Shown piece after piece: positions 508 through 8,868 of a stretch of 64,000 nucleotides of DNA. The position numbers and the translations under genes are program-made. The notes below the pieces were generated by a model. That model saw only the letters and a list, made by a program, of their open reading frames with translations, made no database searches and had not been told where the DNA came from. Every line of letters begins with the position of its first letter. Position 1 is the stretch's first letter. The DNA is from Macrostomum hystrix (Eukaryota > Animalia > Platyhelminthes): contig CATNEN010000038.1 of the NCBI GenBank assembly GCA_950097015.1, forward strand, positions 9,300,001-9,364,000. The letters are read 5' to 3'.

Positions 508-1170
508 CGGCACCAGCGACTGCCTCTGGGCCAACTGAAACTGCTCAGCACACAGAGAACTCAAGCACAGAGTTCGAAATTTCGCTTGCGCTCGAAATAA
601 AAATGTGTAAATTTTATTCCTGTCTCGAAAAAGCAAACAATAGTTTCCTGGTTCTCTTTTATCAGCACGCCTTTGTCTTAGTCGAATATTTCAATTCATT
701 TTTTAAAACAAGGAGTAGTCCAAGCTACACTTGATACGTTGAGTTATCGAATCCTGAACCTCGCGAAAAACACTCTAATTTCCTTCACACGTCACTGGCT
801 GCTTCACACCCGATAGACTTTAATTGTCGAATTACTCGTATTAGCTTGAATAGCATTCATGGGCAGGAAAATCATATTGATGTGCACGGAAACACGCGTT
901 TAAAATTTAGAGCAGGAAGTAAATAGAAATGGATATAATAATATCTATGTAAATTATATTTTATTGAAAAGAACTACAAGTCACAGCATTCACTGTACTT
1001 GACATGTAATCTCGAGCAGATGAATAATATAAGCAAATGATTGAGTTCAAAATCTTGGGAGCAGCGCATTTTAGATCCTTCCGGTTCGGGGGTTCTCACG
1101 CTTGAAGACCCTGAGGGCCCATTCGGTGGTCGCATGAGCAAAGATGTTGCTCTTGTAAGAGAAACGAGGC

Positions 1171-2008
1171 TCAGTTAGCGAAGGGAAAGTACAGCGGTTT
1201 CCTCAGCGTCGTCACGGACTCGACCACCTGCCTGCCGTCGGTCTCGCGAAACACCCGCCCCGCGATTTTCGGCAGCAGCTGGGTGAACTCCACGGATCTC
1301 AGATCAGCCTCCAGGATGGCGTCCCGGAGCGCCTGGCTGAAGATGCCACCGTTAGTCGGGCATCTCTCTGACTTCAGGCCCTCTGAGGTGCTGTAGATGT
1401 ACAGACAGTCCTCCAGACCCTGCAAGCAGCTCCTGGGCTCCAGATGGGGTCCAGCCTCGCGACAGGCTTGAATAACAAAGATCTTCGGCTTCCCAGATAG
1501 CCCGGGACACTCTCTCACCTGGCGAAACAAAGACTCGAGGCCTGCCCTCTCATCGTCGGAGCCGTACACCCAGCCGTACTGGCCGTGGCTCATAACGCAC
1601 AGCAGGAAGGCGTCATGCTGCGCATAGTCTGACACGGGTCTGTTCAGACTGGGCAGGTGTTTGCTCAGGAAGTGGCTGGTCGTATTCTCGTGAATCTCTA
1701 CCTGCAGGCCAAGCCGCTTGAATGCCTGGTACAGTCCTGTCTCGTGTGTATCGGCCTTGGCGCCGTCCCTTCTGTTTAACTCCGGGCCTTTAAAGTCAAT
1801 GTTGTTAATCACAATCGCTACGCCTCGTGTGCGACTGAGCATGCTGTACCTGAGGTCCTCGCCAGCCAGGGGGTCAAGCAGCTGCGATGGGTGGAGCGGC
1901 TGCCCGGTGCCGACCTCCAGCGCTTCGCTCCACGGCTGCAGTTGCAGAGACTCGTCACCAGCGGCTGCCGTCGACTCGCTCGATGCGTCCAATTGATGTC
2001 TGCGAATG
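1171..2008 (-). CDS. Caspase (peptidase C14A) domain exon
   Basis: YSM...RGVAIVINN, RRDGAKAD, LCVMSHG (catalytic His), KPKIFVIQACRE (catalytic Cys), YSTSEG..SER, GGIFSQAL, QVVESVTTLRKPLYF. No in-frame ATG upstream of the domain-internal Met, so upstream exons are needed. Confidence 0.93.
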
Positions 2009-5000
2009 CTGTCGGTTCAGACAAAATCTAAAGATTGCATGTTCCGCTACAAACTACTATAAGTACTATCGATTGGTTATTCAATTTAATTGTCTCATTA
2101 CTATACTGTAATTTGCCTAGCCAGTCAGGCGTAAAGCTGTTTTGTTGCATTCTTTCTGTTAAATTATATAATCCGTAAAAGAAAGCGAGTAGCTTGAGCT
2201 TGCGTGCTTGGGTCGGGGCAGTGCTAAAATGGATAGACGAGCAATTTTCTACTGTTTAATAGCGCTCATTAAGCTATAGCTTCATCTCTCGCGTCTTTGA
2301 ATGAATAGAAAACTTATTCGCGCATGACTTGCTCTGAAATGTAGTAGAGACTGTCAGTATTTTTCTAGAAATGAACTCTAGTTGTGCAGTCTTGCCAGTT
2401 CCAGTTTTTTTCCAGACTGTCTAACCTGTTTGGCCGAGCATTGAGCTGTCTTAGAGAGGCATTAGAGGCACTCAGAGGCATTAGGAAAACCCGAAATGAA
2501 AAGACAATAGAAGTTATAAAACTGCTAAAAACTGATTTGATTTTTTGAAAACCAAACTTTGCATGAGATAAATTTATCCCGTAAATTGAAGATGCTACTC
2601 AAATATTTTCTCTGCAGATACTGCAAATCGCATGTTTTGCAGATGTTGCACACCTACCACTGCTTGATTGATTCCGCAGCAGCCGCATTTCCCAAGAACT
2701 CGGCGCACTGGAGAGCCGTCATCCGGTAATCGCCTGGATGAGACCAGTGCTCCGGCTTGTCCAGGGCTGGGCTCAGCGCCACGATCACGCAGCTGTGGTT
2801 CTGCCTAGCCGCCCAAATCAGCGGCGTGTTGCCGCAGTAGTCCAGCGTGTGCGGCTCCGCACCCAGGCTGAGTAGTAACGTCACGCAGCTCTCCGAGCCG
2901 CGAATCGCTGCGTGCGTCAGCGCGGTTTGGAGGCAGCGATCCTGGAGACCAAGGTGACATATGGAGGTAATGAAACACTCAGGTAAAGACTAGTGGTGTA
3001 CTACTATAAACATCACACGCACGCACAGTCGGTAACATGTCCGACTCTCCCACCAAAGTCCCAGTGCTCGAATCTGCTGCGAGTAATTTTGAGGCGCAGC
3101 CGCAAAGGCTTGGCGATTTGTCGTGCAAATTTTGCCGATCAATCGGCCAGCCCACCATGCACAGTGAGTATTTTTAATTGCTGCTGCGGGCAATGGCACA
3201 TTATCTGATGAGCGGCAGCCAGCGAGGAGGCAATTCTGCCCATTTCGCTGACTCCTGAGCACACACGCACTCAGATACTGTACGCAGCACACGCTCTCAC
3301 AGGTGTGTACATCTGCCCTGACTTTCTCATCGTCAGGCAGTGTACACTTCAATGTGCCTTGAAGGTTGGTCATCAAGGGAATAAATCGCACGACAAGCCG
3401 CCAAGCCATCTCTTCGTGGCTGCGCCCCAAATTAATGTGGCCTCGCCGCGGAATCGAGCTCAGGGATCAGCTCAAAACTTACTACAAACTTCAGCCGCCT
3501 ACCTTTTTCTCCAGGTCAGCTCCCATGCTGTACAGTAGCCGTATCGTGCTTGGATGATCGTTAGCCGCCGCGTGCATCACAGGTGTCTCCAGCGAGTTGT
3601 CAGCAGCATTCACTTCCTCTGCTACAGCTGAGCCGCCCTGGCTACTTATCAGTTCAAGAAATACTTTCAACGCCTGATCATTTCCGTAGCGACTGGCCAC
3701 TGCAATCGGTGTGCGACCTCGCGTATCGCGTTCATTGATGGTAGCGCCGTTCGTGATCAGGGTGCGAAGCAGCTGCGGATCGCCGCTTTTGGCTAGTAAG
3801 ATTAGCGGTGTCTCATTCAAATCATTGACGCTCTGTGCAGCTTTTCCCTCATCGCAGAGGCGCTGTATGTCTGCGGCTGAAATCTCTGCGGTCTGTTCCT
3901 TTGCGTGCTCATCTTCGTTGTCACGCTTCGCTTTGATAAACAATGGATGCCTAATTAGCAAGTCTGATTGCGAAGCTAACTTTGTGTGTATTTTCTCTGT
4001 GTGTAGAGACATGTCTTGGATTGCAGTTTCAGGCGCAAGCTCTTCGAAGCACTTGTCCTCTGGGTCACAGTCAGGCGAATCATTTGTTGAAGCAGAATTC
4101 GCATCCTTATTTTCTATACATGACGCATCGACAGCGAAGGTTTCTTGTTGCGGTGAATTGACACCAGCCTGCAGACATATCGACGGTTCAACACTTGGCC
4201 CTCGATGTGAACGCACTTCGCTTGGTGAATAGCAATCTGACACGTCGCTCTGCTGGACATTATCCGATGGACTTGTGGCTGTCCCAGCATTTTCAGACTC
4301 GTTTACCAGCAAGTTAATGCTTGGCTTGGCACTAAAGTCAGTAGACTGGGCTTCAGCAGCGCTTCTCAACCCCGAAACTGTGTCGGGCTGTAACATTCGA
4401 TTAGCTGACAGATGTGAAAACGAACTACTTAAAGAGCCTTCTGTACCAACCGAAGACCTCTGCAGTGACAAGTTGGTGTGCAGCGCGCTGCCAAGCGTGT
4501 CTGAAGGACGCAAAAGCTCGCTCATCTGTCTCTTCACTTCGCGGCGCGCAGGCACCGGACTCCGTGGCATCTCACCTTCGCTCACTTGACTCCTTGTAAC
4601 TTTTGGCGGTTGCCTGGTTGCTTCCAGCCTCAACAAAACTGGTGTGTTGGCCGTCGATTTCAAGTTTTCTGGCTCGAAATCAAAACTTGTCGGCAGGAAG
4701 CCGCCTTCGGGCTGCCTAAAAGTACGTCAAATGCGTCCTAATTTCAGCTTGATTGAAGTTACGATTGATAAACTAGATATTAACTTTTATCTCCAGCCTT
4801 GTTTCTCAGTGCGAGTAGGTTAAGAAGGGAATTGATAACCCCTGAACACTAAAGAGTAGTAATAATAATAATAATAATAATAATTGCAGGAGGGCTGCGG
4901 GCAATGGCACATCCTTTTTGTGACAAAAAAACCGAAGCCAGCGAGGAAACAATTGCGCCCATTTTGCTGACTCCTGAGCACACACGCACACAGATACCGT

Positions 5001-8000
5001 ACGCAGCACGCACTCACACAGGTGTGTACATCTACCCTGACTTTCTGATCGTCAGGCAGTGTACGAGTACACTCTCCCTGTGCCTTGGAGGTTGGCTTTT
5101 AATGGCGTGAATTGCATGACAAGCCTCCAAACCTTCTATCCACGGCTGCGCCTCAAATAAATGTGGCCTTTGCCGCGGAATCGAGCTCATTAGGACATTG
5201 GGGCGAGAGGCAAACGCGTTAACCGCTCTGCCACCGAACCCCCGAACACTGAAGAGTACGCGAAAATCTTACACAATGATGTTTAAACAATTCTGTGGTG
5301 AAATTAAGTGATTTTAGTCCAGCTGGGTCAATGGCGTTGAGCTTTCTTATGGGGTATGAGATTATGCTCGAAACCATGCACTTTAAAGGGTGTAAATGGG
5401 GTGGGTAATTGCTGGAGCTGCATGTACCACGTAGAAATTTAAACTACACAAAGGTAGCTTTCAAGGCTTACTCGCCGGCCTCGAAAAATTCCTTGGCATC
5501 GTACCTAAAATTTGCAGGGTTTTTTGTAGAGTTGACAATTTGTAAAATAAAATTAAGGCTAATTAAATATTAAAATGGCACACCAGTCGCTCTGAATTCT
5601 GATTAAATAAATTAAAATCATTTTTAGGTTGCCACAGAGACAAGGCTTGTGCAAGACGCGTCCCAACTTATTCATCCCTAGGTGACGCACGCACACAGAT
5701 ACTGTACGCATGTGTACATCTGCACTGACTTTCTCATCGTCAGGCAGTAAACACTTTTACTGTGCCTCGTGGAGGTTGGCCCTCATAAGCGTAAACTGCA
5801 CGACAAGCCTCCAAGCCTTCTCTCCGCGGCTGCGCCACAAATAAATGTGGCCTCACGGCGGAATCGAACTCATGGCGTTAACCGCTCTGCCAATGACCTA
5901 GAGGCACTAGGTCCTTAGGTCCTTAGCGAAGCAAATGCAGCGATATGATTCGTTACATCGTCAAATATTAACTTAAGCAAACAAAAGCGGCAAACTTACT
6001 GCGTGAGAAGCTCAACTAGTTTCTTTTTTTTGTTTTTCTCAGCCAGCTGAAGCGCAGTGAGACCCGCATTGTTTTTCAATGACCAATCTGCTCCTGCCTG
6101 CAGCAGCGAATGGGCCGTCTTCTTCGACATGCAGTCGTTGCAGATGTCGCTGATCGCCACCTGCATCAGCGGTGTCAGTCCGTCCTCGGTGCGAGAGTTC
6201 ACGTCAACCCCGACGCCGAGAAGGGCCTTCAGAGCCACGGAGTTGCCGCTCTTTGCCGCCGCGTGCAGGCAGCTGCTGCCCCAAACGTCTGCGCTGGTCG
6301 GATCGCCCTGACTGATCAGGGCCTGCAGCACGTGCCTGCTGCTCCTGTTGCTGTCCGCGAACTTCCACAGCGCTGTGGCACCGTTTCGGTCCGGCAAGTC
6401 GGTGTTAGAAATGGTCAGCAGTTGCTTCAAGTCACCTACTTGGCTAGACTCCGCGAATCTCACCAGACGCTTGCGAGCGTCCTCCAGCTGAAATGAAGAG
6501 TCACTTTGGTCGACAATATTTGTTCTCAAGTTGTCAAATTTCAAATCAAAGTGGCACACAATAATAGGAGACCAGATTCAACAGTCGACCCAGCGAGAGG
6601 CAATTCTGCTCATTTCGCGCTGACTTCAGATGGCACACAAACTCTGCAGCATCATTGCTGTCAAGTCTGTTGTTGTATCTCATTTAGCTGCCGCTTGCCT
6701 TCTGAAGACCCATGTTTATCGTGACTGCCTCCGCCTCCGCCATTCAACCCTAGCAATTTAGAAGATGCATGAACTTTGGTCGTTCATTTTTTAGCTAGCG
6801 AACTTACAATGTGTTGGAGGAAAATAGTTCCAGGCGTGGGTATTGTCAAGCCTGTTTCTCTGCAATGAGTTTGTAAGTCGATAGCTATAAAATTAATTTT
6901 AAGCGCTTCATAATTTTGTTCAGCTTACATTTCAATTATTTCAGCTATTTCATTCTTTTTTGTCTCTTTTGCCATGTCTAGCGCTGTGCGTCCGTCACAA
7001 GCTCTCGTGCTCAATAGCGTGCCTTTGAATTCGAGGAACCTGCACTGCCGCAAGAGATGCAGGAGGTGTTTTGCACAGCGCCAGCTCCCGGCGAGAGCTG
7101 CCTCCATGAGCGGCGTTCGGCCCGAGTTGTTCTGCAGCCATTTGGCATCGAATGGCAGCAGAGCCAGCAGCTGCAGGTGATCGCACTTGGCTGCAAGGTG
7201 GGCAGCCGTGTTGCCTTCGGAGTCGGCTGCACCTGGATTGCAACCGTTGCGCATGAAGTAGTTGACACATTTCGACGCTGCTGCATTCTTCAAATGCAAG
7301 CCGGAGTCAAACTCTGCTGCCAGCATTAGTACAGTCCGACCGTTGGCACCGCGAATTCGCATCAGCTCATTCGTAGTCAGCATTCGGACCTTTTCAAACT
7401 CGCCTTGCATGGCCAGCTGCGCAAGAAGCGACATCACCTGGAATTTACAGAGTGGAAAAAGCCGTCAATCAATCAAGCTGTTAGACCACGGTGCATTTCA
7501 AATAACCACTGCCCACTACTTTTCGATAGCTTCCAAACCGAATGACCGATTCTCGTGAAAGTCCACCATCTGAATCAAATTTTTCCGCCCTTTTCGATGA
7601 ACTAACTTACAAAGCCGTCTGGCGTCAGAATCGTCGAGATATTCAGCGATTCCTGTCGAAGAACCTGCTGGTGACAAGGACAACTAACACTTCACTGTAT
7701 AAACCTCTATTGCGAATCCATATTGGTTCAATAAACTATAATTAGCAATATAATCAATAAAATATAATCAACAATAACAGCCGACATGGTTACATTTATT
7801 GGGAAATTTTGTGAGCAGAGAAGGTATGCCTATATTGGTTGCTTTTGCCACCAGACACCCAGACGAAAATCGTTGAATATCTCGACGATGTTGATGTTTT
7901 GTGATAGTGGAAGTTGTTTCATCGGAGCGGAAAAGTTTAGCCCGTTTTCTAGGTTTTCATGGCGAATTAATGGTTGAATATTTTAGGAGATAGAGGAAAA

Positions 8001-8868
8001 AATGTGGGTACTTGAAAGCCCCCTTGGTTTCCACGGCTCGTCCAGTTCCTCCGGGGCGACAAGACGAGCCACGTTCTTCCCTACGGAAGACAACGCTGCA
8101 GGACGGACCGGCGGACCACCCTGACCGGCCCCGCGCACTCGCCTGTCTGCGGGCCTACAGGGTTAGCGGTATGGGCGATCCTCGCCTCCCCGCTGTGTCC
8201 ATGGACCACCCTAAGTCAAGTAAGTCAAGCCCCCTTGGTCTTTCTACTGCTTATAAGCAAATCGTGACTACAAGCTAAACCACAAGCGCATGTATGTTGC
8301 AAGGGTCTAAACAATAGACCTGTTTTAACGGCCACACATAGTTGCTAGGAAAGACTCCGGCTTGGCCGTCAATTTCTCCCAGCCACCAGTCAGCGTCGAT
8401 GGTGCGTTTGTGCAGGATGCGCACTATTCGGCCCATTTCCAGGGTCAGTTCGTCTCCACGTTTTGGATCGGCCGTGTATGGACGCACGGCTGCGGCCAGC
8501 TCCTCTGTGCTGCCGAAGTAGAACAATTCGATGGGCCTGGTGAACAGGCTCTGGCCGCAGTAGAATGAGCAGCCAGGCTGCTGCATTCTCAGGTCCTTGA
8601 TTAATACCTCCGTACCGGCTGGCAGCTCGTTGAGGCCGGACACCAGTTGAGCTCGGATGCACCGAACCAGGCAGCTGCTGGGAAATAAGCCAGTCTCGCC
8701 GGTTCTTTCGCTCTGGCCAACAATGGTCGGGCTGTCAAACAAAGGCGGATTATCCGCGCTTACTAGGTCACCAGGTTCAAGGCCAAGCACTCTACCGTCT
8801 CTTGAAGCTTCTTGATGGCAAGTTGCCACGTAGGTGTAGGATCCGTTGTTGGCGTTTTGTTTCTTCAT
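1171..8868 (-). CDS. Multidomain caspase: SH3-like + SH3 + ankyrin blocks + S/D-rich linker + ankyrin block + C14A caspase domain (~1321 aa, 8 exons)
   Basis: Hand-spliced exons 8868-8320, 7437-6929, 6859-6808, 6487-6000, 5504-5472, 4715-3503, 2941-2658, 2008-1171. All introns are GT..AG, phases match (0,2,0,2,2,0,2), and the total of 3966 nt is divisible by 3 with no internal stop. The last junction and the 52-nt exon are the least certain. Confidence 0.7.
2658..2941 (-). CDS. Ankyrin-repeat exon (about 3 repeats)
   Basis: DRCLQTALTHAAIRG, DYCGNTPLIWAARQN, MTALQCAEFLGN; acceptor ctccag at 2942, donor TG|GTAGGT at 2657. Confidence 0.85.
3185..3465 (-). mobile_element. SINE family A, truncated copy
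   Basis: Shares gtgtgctcaggagtcagcgaaatg..cagaattgcctcctcgctggctgc and gagctcgattccgcggcgaggcc with the full copy at 29951-30311. Confidence 0.8.
3503..4715 (-). CDS. Exon with low-complexity Ser/Asp-rich linker followed by ankyrin repeats
   Basis: ORF 3491-4663; NETPLILLAKSG, GRTPIAVASRYG, ETPVMHAAAND; acceptor ttttag at 4716, donor AAG|GTAGGC at 3502. Confidence 0.85.
4859..5243 (-). mobile_element. SINE family A, full-length, with TSD
   Basis: tRNA-like head (A box TGGCAGAGCGG, B box-like GCTCGATTCC), (ATT)n tail, 15-bp TSD gaacact[a/g]aagagta at 4844-4858 and 5244-5258. Confidence 0.88.
5683..5893 (-). mobile_element. SINE family A, partial
   Basis: Matches the head and body of family A. 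Confidence 0.75.
6000..6487 (-). CDS. Ankyrin-repeat exon
   Basis: NGATALWKFA, GSSCLHAAAKSGN, DGLTPLMQVA, AGLTALQLAE; acceptor tttcag at 6488, donor CA|GTAAGT at 5999. Confidence 0.85.
6929..7437 (-). CDS. Ankyrin-repeat exon
   Basis: NGRTVLMLAA, EGNTAAHLAA, SGRTPLMEAA, DGRTALDMA; acceptor ttccag at 7438, donor AT|GTAAGC at 6928. Confidence 0.85.
7482..8241. mobile_element. Non-autonomous TIR element (family also at 42759-43142 and inverted at ~30345-30780)
   Basis: Imperfect TIRs AGACCACGG..TTTCAA..ACCAC / GTGGG..TTGAAA..CCCCTTGGTCT; internal sequence is clearly similar to the other two copies (aaagccgtc..gtcag..atcgtcgaga..., agccgacatggttaca). Confidence 0.7.
8029..8226 (+). mobile_element. 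5'-truncated non-LTR retroelement 3' end nested in the TIR element
   Basis: 13-bp direct repeat aagcccccttggt at 8016-8028 and 8227-8239; GC-rich insert ending in an (aagt/caagt) microsatellite tail; absent from the sister copy at ~43130. Confidence 0.65.
8320..8868 (-). CDS. Exon with two SH3 domains (first degenerate, second canonical CIN85/CD2AP-like)
   Basis: LGLEPGDLV...GQSERTGETGLFPSSCLV and AVRPY...DELTLEMGRIVRILHK...DWWLGEIDGQAGVFPSNYV; donor CAG|GTCTAT at 8319; tttcag acceptor 1 nt before the ATG. Confidence 0.85.

Follow-up and report, generated by a model that had tools for sequence, protein, structure and literature searches.

A window of 64,000 nucleotides (nt) from the free-living macrostomid flatworm Macrostomum hystrix (contig CATNEN010000038.1, positions 9,300,001 to 9,364,000 of the forward strand) carries, at positions 1171-8868 of its minus strand, one expressed gene of eight exons that encodes a protein of ~1,321 residues, in which a pair of SH3-type domains and approximately 14 ankyrin repeats stand ahead of an apparently intact caspase domain. 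Animal initiator caspases are taught as death-fold proteins that carry CARD or DED prodomains and need adaptor platforms; no death-fold family was matched in any exon of this gene (Pfam, E ≤ 0.01), in agreement with an initial annotation of this DNA that had described a prodomain without a death fold. On balance the product is probably a long-prodomain, initiator-type, Asp-specific caspase that would act as a single uncleaved chain and be switched on by scaffold-induced dimerisation, a mechanism that we infer.

Six long open frames on the minus strand of 1171-8868 are joined by two micro-exons into a single coding sequence of 3,963 nt, or 1,321 codons, with GT-AG borders and compatible phases throughout. 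Exon 1 (8320-8868; 549 nt, phase 0) begins with the ATG at 8868-8866 and encodes the SH3 head; exon 2 (6929-7437; 509 nt) encodes a first ankyrin block of ~4 repeats (Ank_2, E=2e-17), and exon 3 (6808-6859), a micro-exon of 52 nt, restores the frame between exons 2 and 4. A second ankyrin block, again of ~4 repeats (Ank_2, E=2e-19), occupies exon 4 (6000-6487; 488 nt), after which the 33-nt exon 5 (5472-5504) adds 11 in-frame residues; exon 6 (3503-4715; 1,213 nt) comprises a long linker (3845-4715) followed by three ankyrin repeats (3503-3844), and exon 7 (2658-2941; 284 nt) holds the last three. Exon 8 (1171-2008), coding at 2008-1174 with the stop codon at 1173-1171, encodes a 55-residue segment and then the caspase domain (1204-1842).

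Transcript support for this model comes from four small sequencing runs of one study (X1-X4; the kind of run is not on record), whose contigs were aligned to window positions 1101-7100 and are spliced, and therefore represent complementary DNA (cDNA). Six of the seven predicted junctions, those of both micro-exons among them, are present in these contigs, as CT..AC on the plus strand and thus GT..AG on the gene strand, with joints in all four runs at 2008/2658, 2940/3502 (+1), 4714/5471 (+1), 5501/5997 (+3), 6487/6808 and 6859/6929, exactly as predicted; in every run the joints of exon 5 are as deep as its flanking exons. A single X1 contig of 3,091 nt spans exons 4, 5, 6, 7 and 8 and continues ~165 nt beyond 1101 into the 3′ untranslated region (936-1170, end approximate). 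Of the words sampled from the 7.8-kb stretch, 54-57% occur in the runs, close to the 52% of its length that exons and the included 3′ untranslated region account for (~4,030 of 7,801 nt), and expression in these whole-animal runs is moderate and steady (contig word depth 18-29). For the remaining junction, contigs of 1,107-1,122 nt that join exons 3 and 2 reach 883-898 nt past position 7100, the remainder of exon 2 (337 nt) and exon 1 (549 nt) summing to 886 nt, and two Macrostomum lignano models, P0004 and P0161, run collinear with the gene through this position; from this arithmetic and collinearity we infer that 8320/7437 joins exon 1 to exon 2.

The initial annotation had spliced the six frames and the two micro-exons (52 and 33 nt) into one frame of ~1321 residues, and the exons, phases and total found here are the same; the critical ankyrin-to-caspase junction at 2658/2008, which it had singled out for checking, lies in contigs of all four runs. 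Of the outcomes it had named as telling against a fusion, neither transcripts ending at the TAG at 2654 nor use of an acceptor at 2000 was seen in X1-X4 among the joints listed, and contig depth is zero at 2101-2300. It erred in denying the caspase exon a usable ATG, as an in-frame ATG occurs at residue 56, just ahead of the domain; despite this codon, the transcripts show the exon to be an internal one.

Intron 3 (6488-6807) is retained in a 380-nt contig (6458-6837) found in all four runs, at a depth of 6-11 compared with 6-13 for the spliced joint and approximately zero for the other introns. Retention introduces a stop after 7 codons and would yield a 377-residue SH3-SH3-ankyrin product lacking the caspase, which may be a decoy isoform; alternatively, the contig may be an unspliced precursor.

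Sequence searches, all run exon by exon, place a canonical SH3 domain at residues 126-180 of exon 1 (8329-8493), with Pfam matches to SH3_9, SH3_2 and SH3_1 at residues 129-178 (E=8e-13) and with Grb2, SH3KBP1/CIN85, SH3D21 and CD2AP as best PDB matches. A degenerate SH3 precedes it at approximately residues 10-70 (8659-8841), where the Pfam SH3 matches over residues 1-69 are sub-threshold (E=0.025 and 0.11). The order of an SH3-like domain followed by an SH3, as given in the initial annotation, is nevertheless right, because residues 1-69 match an undoubted SH3 encoded by a CIN85/CD2AP-like gene in the same genome (E=6e-11), hhalign matches the first to the second SH3 (95%, E=4e-8), and a language-model search with residues 1-125 returned SH3 families only (0.91); the remainder of the annotated order, ankyrin, linker, ankyrin and caspase, is likewise correct. 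Canonical ligand-binding residues are kept in the second SH3 only. Between the two domains lies a 55-residue insert (8497-8658), conserved in M. lignano; a third SH3 was considered for it and rejected, hhalign giving no support and the language-model lead (0.83) falling under the level that counts. An AlphaFold2 model of exon 1 from a three-row alignment was unusable (predicted local distance difference test score, pLDDT, 33.5). Exon 1 is 43% identical to the N-terminus of M. lignano P0004.

The nearest in-genome relatives of exon 1 are the SH3 domains of that CIN85/CD2AP-like adaptor gene (L038; G000:C29:915001-925000, minus strand ~3274-7783), which encodes a pair of SH3 domains followed by a Pro-rich stretch and ends in a coiled coil. 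The resemblance of the SH3 pair to these adaptor domains suggests exon shuffling, and the lineage of this adaptor gene is the likely source of the head. CIN85 (SH3KBP1) and CD2AP provide the SH3 domains closest to the canonical one of this gene, and its SH3-x-SH3 head is paralogous to that of the in-genome adaptor; however, CIN85 and CD2AP have three SH3 domains as well as a Pro-rich region and a coiled coil at the C-terminus, whereas the caspase gene has one canonical and one degenerate SH3 and lacks a Pro-rich or coiled-coil tail, so that the SH3 module alone is in common. Recruitment or gating of the caspase by proline-rich ligands would be plausible for such a head.

Ankyrin repeats were identified by Pfam in exons 2 and 4, at the end of exon 6 (Ank_2 at residues 287-387, E=3e-20) and in exon 7; counted by eye they number ~4, 4 and 6 (~14 in total). 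The 290-residue linker of exon 6 is rich in Ser, Glu, Asp and Pro (14% S, 9% E, 6.6% D, 53% polar) and is probably disordered; it has no Pfam match at E ≤ 0.1, a threshold at which a death fold hidden within it was also sought and rejected. Over its entire length, exon 7 shares 46% identity with the last exon but one of a Mab21-ankyrin-caspase paralog (E=3e-20), and it shares 36% with that of a kinase paralog (E=2e-16), compared with a generic ankyrin likeness to P0083, a classic ankyrin caspase; the resemblance to the paralog exons indicates that the last ankyrin exon and the caspase exon form a shared cassette.

The caspase domain matches the Peptidase_C14 model over its full length (PF00656, E=1.2e-30, model positions 1-233 of 233), covering both p20 and p10, with caspase-3 as its best PDB match (6wi4, E=1e-23) and caspase-8 among the further ones (6px9, E=4e-19). 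The catalytic His (SHG; codon 1585-1587) and Cys (QACRE; codon 1462-1464), the Gln and both S1 Arg residues (RRDG, SER) align with those of solved caspases and of relatives. In the M. lignano ortholog the pentapeptide reads QACRL, and the Mab21 paralogs have QACRH; Drosophila Dredd has QACQE, and the Gly of QACxG is not essential in every caspase. The inter-subunit linker comprises 16 residues (AGPHLEPRSCLQGLED) between QACRE and CLYIYS and offers no cleavable Asp, its sole Asp being structural and aligned with the (E/A)D that immediately precedes the first small-subunit strand in the other caspases of the alignment. A short Asp-free linker is found in every member of the macrostomid clade described below, whereas classic flatworm ankyrin caspases and caspase-8/-10 have a long one with ETD/EAD-type Asp. 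Upstream, the 55-residue segment between the last ankyrin repeat and the caspase domain contains HQLD/A, with LQTD/A in M. lignano; a conserved ankyrin-caspase cleavage motif was rejected, the segment being poly-Gly/Ser in the paralogs and the motif absent there.

Modelled as a homodimer, the caspase domain reached an interface score (ipSAE) of 0.87 compared with 0.02 for the best control, with a partner pLDDT of at least 85, a pass that the predictor may owe to its memory of caspase dimers already solved. At least 98% of contacts are common to the three runs, and the predicted interface centres on the C-terminal strand (residues 211-222). Among proteins solved as pairs, 21 of 30 attain the score mark, compared with 0 of 23 solved as single chains; on animals the figure is 7 of 16. 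We take the model as consistent with a normal caspase fold and interface, and not as proof of dimerisation.

In an exhaustive HMMER search, M. lignano proteins came out on top, and the best matches of the locus are all from this species (43-57% identity). P0004 and P0161 (856 and 876 residues) reproduce the order from the SH3 head through the ankyrin blocks to the caspase; P0001 comprises ankyrin and caspase at 53-57% identity; P0002 and P0003 are kinase-ankyrin-caspases; and P0012, P0157 and P0028 combine ankyrin repeats and caspase with a Pfam match to Mab-21 that is weak. The search for paralogs proposed in the initial annotation showed the SH3 gene to be single-copy in its own 220-Mb genome and uncovered clusters of paralogs (37-44% identity) with other heads. 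Mab21-like-headed genes, orthologous to P0012 and P0028, form a tandem trio (L021-L024; G000:C1:3093001-3133000) with a further member at C1:9216001-9226000 (L031), and a kinase-(caspase-like)-ankyrin-caspase cluster, orthologous to P0002 and P0003, lies ~520-560 kb before the window (L025, L028 and L029; G000:C38:8736001-8786000). The catalytic Cys is absent from L028:6288-7304 (QADRG), from L029:6797-7834 (EAGRD) and from M. lignano P0024 (QANRG).

A quick maximum-likelihood tree built from 89 caspase domains, without duplicates from the clusters, matches not spanning both subunits, or P0004, whose model is damaged, unites 14 domains in a macrostomid clade on a long stem (approximate likelihood ratio support, SH-aLRT, 98), within which the SH3 gene pairs with P0001 (98). 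By sequence comparison, the gene thus falls in a macrostomid clade whose members share the last-ankyrin and caspase exon cassette joined to different heads: an SH3 pair, a protein kinase with a pseudocaspase, or a Mab21/cGAS-like domain. The M. lignano kinase-caspases P0002/P0003 and the Mab21-like P0012/P0157/P0028 resemble the SH3 gene in clade (98), cassette and short Asp-free linker, but differ in carrying a kinase (with a caspase-like domain) or a Mab21/cGAS-like head, and in forming tandem clusters where the SH3 gene is single-copy.

Classic ankyrin caspases from Cichlidogyrus (P0075), Taenia (P0128) and M. lignano (P0083) group apart (95), among caspase-8/-10-like sequences; Pfam matches all three to both ankyrin and C14. 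These are the only classic members in the tree, which includes no Schistosoma ankyrin caspase, a word-indexed search with P0075 having been swamped by ankyrin proteins; similar searches gave one match for the caspase exon, and M. lignano relatives with one fish caspase only for the P0004 caspase region. When the macrostomid clade was held together with the classic ankyrin caspases, again three members only, the resulting tree was not rejected (approximately unbiased test, p-AU 0.68) and had a log-likelihood 9.9 above that of the free quick search, so that the ankyrin-caspases of flatworms may all go back to one origin. Outside the flatworms, P0033 of the jellyfish Sanderia malayensis has an ankyrin-caspase-ankyrin-caspase order and P0047 of the amphioxus Branchiostoma belcheri is an fn3-kinase-caspase; similar fusions seem to have arisen there independently.

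Ankyrin caspases have been described as a platyhelminth-specific type restricted to parasitic species (PMC11463336, Genome Biol Evol 2024), which credits Lee et al. 2014 with their first observation, in Schistosoma. The same study placed a single M. lignano caspase, whose pro-domain is kinase-like, as sister of the ankyrin caspases, found no other unexpected pro-domain in platyhelminths and does not contain the term 'SH3' in its text (PMC11463336). P0083 (PAA94436.1, 'Caspase-8', 599 residues), with ankyrin repeats and Peptidase_C14, groups with the Taenia and Cichlidogyrus ankyrin caspases and is thus a classic ankyrin caspase in a free-living flatworm, which contradicts the reported restriction to parasites (PMC11463336). 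In common with the ankyrin caspases of Schistosoma, Taenia and Cichlidogyrus ('caspase-8'), the protein described here has an ankyrin pro-domain directly before the caspase in one platyhelminth polypeptide, without a death fold; P0075, P0128 and P0083 differ from it in their length of 600-800 residues, lack of SH3, single ankyrin block and long Asp-containing linker. No paper on an SH3-bearing caspase was found in the literature searched, and the initial annotation was therefore correct in part when it called the architecture uncharacterised: the SH3-SH3 head is new in that literature, ankyrin-caspases as a kind were already published for flatworms, and the modular design of the family is barely described.

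For the dimerisation-activated caspase that we consider probable, the SH3 and ankyrin modules would dock the protein on a scaffold or ligand, and the clustered caspase domains would dimerise through strand beta-6, which would activate the enzyme without linker cleavage, by analogy with the way in which MALT1 or uncleaved caspase-8/-9 can work. The HQLD/A site just after the last ankyrin repeat (LQTD/A in M. lignano) may then release the protease, with cell death, immunity or non-lethal proteolytic signalling as possible output. The paracaspase MALT1 is Arg-specific, combines a death domain with Ig domains, and is thought to be activated by scaffold-driven dimerisation without inter-subunit cleavage. 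In it, too, a scaffold protein of several domains ends in a caspase-fold protease, although the parallel is one of working principle and not of family, the SH3-ankyrin protein being a caspase proper (C14A) that has an Asp pocket and SH3 and ankyrin modules. Caspase-8 and caspase-10 are comparable in their long prodomain, in the caspase-8 structure among the best matches and in a proximity-activation logic that would be the same; they differ in having DED domains, QACQG and a long linker with processing sites, as opposed to no DED, QACRE and a linker of ~16 residues.

Several observations weigh against this mechanism or the model beneath it. The pentapeptide reads QACRE in place of QACxG, and an L2 linker as short as this one might keep the enzyme zymogen-like; the catalytic Cys is missing from three kinase-subclade paralogs, and loss of activity thus occurs in this family. 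The release site is represented by two sequences, HQLD and LQTD, and is absent from paralogs, and the homodimer model may reflect memory of known structures. The first SH3 lacks the canonical Trp and ALYDY-type residues, the 290-residue linker was not found in the M. lignano models, themselves imperfect, and the exon 1/exon 2 junction lies outside the 1101-7100 span of the aligned cDNA contigs.

The first two of these points would also fit a caspase domain that has become a pseudo-protease or regulator, a scaffold or decoy that binds caspases or substrates in the manner of c-FLIP, the ultra-short uncleavable linker locking the active-site loops; the lost Cys of the kinase-subclade relatives and the extra caspase-like domain of the kinase paralogs point in the same direction. 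We nevertheless hold this to be unlikely, as the gene and its M. lignano ortholog, only 53-57% identical, have both kept His, Cys, Gln and the two S1 Arg, 6wi4, the nearest of the solved caspases, is similarly short where the linker aligns, and QACQE of Dredd offers a precedent for the altered pentapeptide.

A different reading retains an active protease and assigns it to non-lethal signalling at membranes or endosomes, where, docked via its CIN85/CD2AP-type SH3, it would cleave a small number of substrates and work in a paracaspase-like fashion, and not as an apoptotic initiator. The closeness of the canonical SH3 to CIN85/SH3KBP1, CD2AP and SH3D21, a nearest in-genome SH3 relative that is an adaptor with Pro-rich and coiled-coil parts, and the moderate, steady expression are consistent with such a role, as would be the likeness of a single-chain uncleaved design to paracaspase logic; however, the classic ankyrin caspases, a possible sister group, sit among caspase-8/-10-like sequences in the tree, and a role of this kind is unlikely.

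That the fusion is an artefact, with an SH3-ankyrin gene and an ankyrin-caspase gene joined by read-through or mis-assembled contigs, is very unlikely: the exon 1/exon 2 junction is outside the span of the aligned contigs, retention of intron 3, frequent among the transcripts, would stop the frame behind the first ankyrin block, and the NCBI M. lignano model P0001 has the ankyrin-caspase end only, but each run has one contig covering exons 4-8 at uniform depth and another joining exon 3, exon 2 and ~886 further nt, all junctions are phase-compatible GT-AG, including those of two micro-exons otherwise without purpose, and the UniProt M. lignano models P0004 and P0161 share the head-to-tail order.

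The introns of the gene contain three copies of a same-orientation interspersed repeat of ~250-330 nt (3217-3465, 4936-5191 and 5711-5875), at which cDNA contig depth runs into the thousands, indicating a repeat family abundant in transcripts; ARAGORN and Rfam gave no match for these repeats or the locus. At the left edge of the window, a Gly-rich open frame on the plus strand (256-507; GGSGGGGG runs, a patch of 63% G+C) has no Pfam match and may be part of a gene running off the window.

More broadly, and as a tentative scheme that we would regard as doubtful in its entirety, macrostomids may possess modular single-chain sensor-effector caspases, in which exon shuffling has placed an uncleaved, dimerisation-activated cassette behind SH3, kinase and cGAS-like heads; the SH3 form would couple receptor, endocytic or ubiquitin-adaptor complexes to a caspase, and the intron-3-retaining isoform could serve as a caspase-less SH3-ankyrin decoy tuning the response. 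Such a system would stand in for death-fold adaptor signalling, because FADD is absent from flatworms (PMC11463336). The published view of ankyrin-caspases as confined to parasitic flatworms is corrected by M. lignano P0083 and by the many ankyrin-caspase genes of the M. hystrix genome. The gene described here provides a caspase with an SH3 adaptor module and ~14 ankyrin repeats as its recruitment part, transcript-verified and conserved in a second Macrostomum species, in a genus that is a tractable regenerating model amenable to RNA interference and transgenesis. Its protease part, to judge from the linker, would not be activatable by the usual linker cleavage and, together with the kinase- and cGAS-like-headed paralogs, the gene points to a cassette system that may wire different inputs to one protease.

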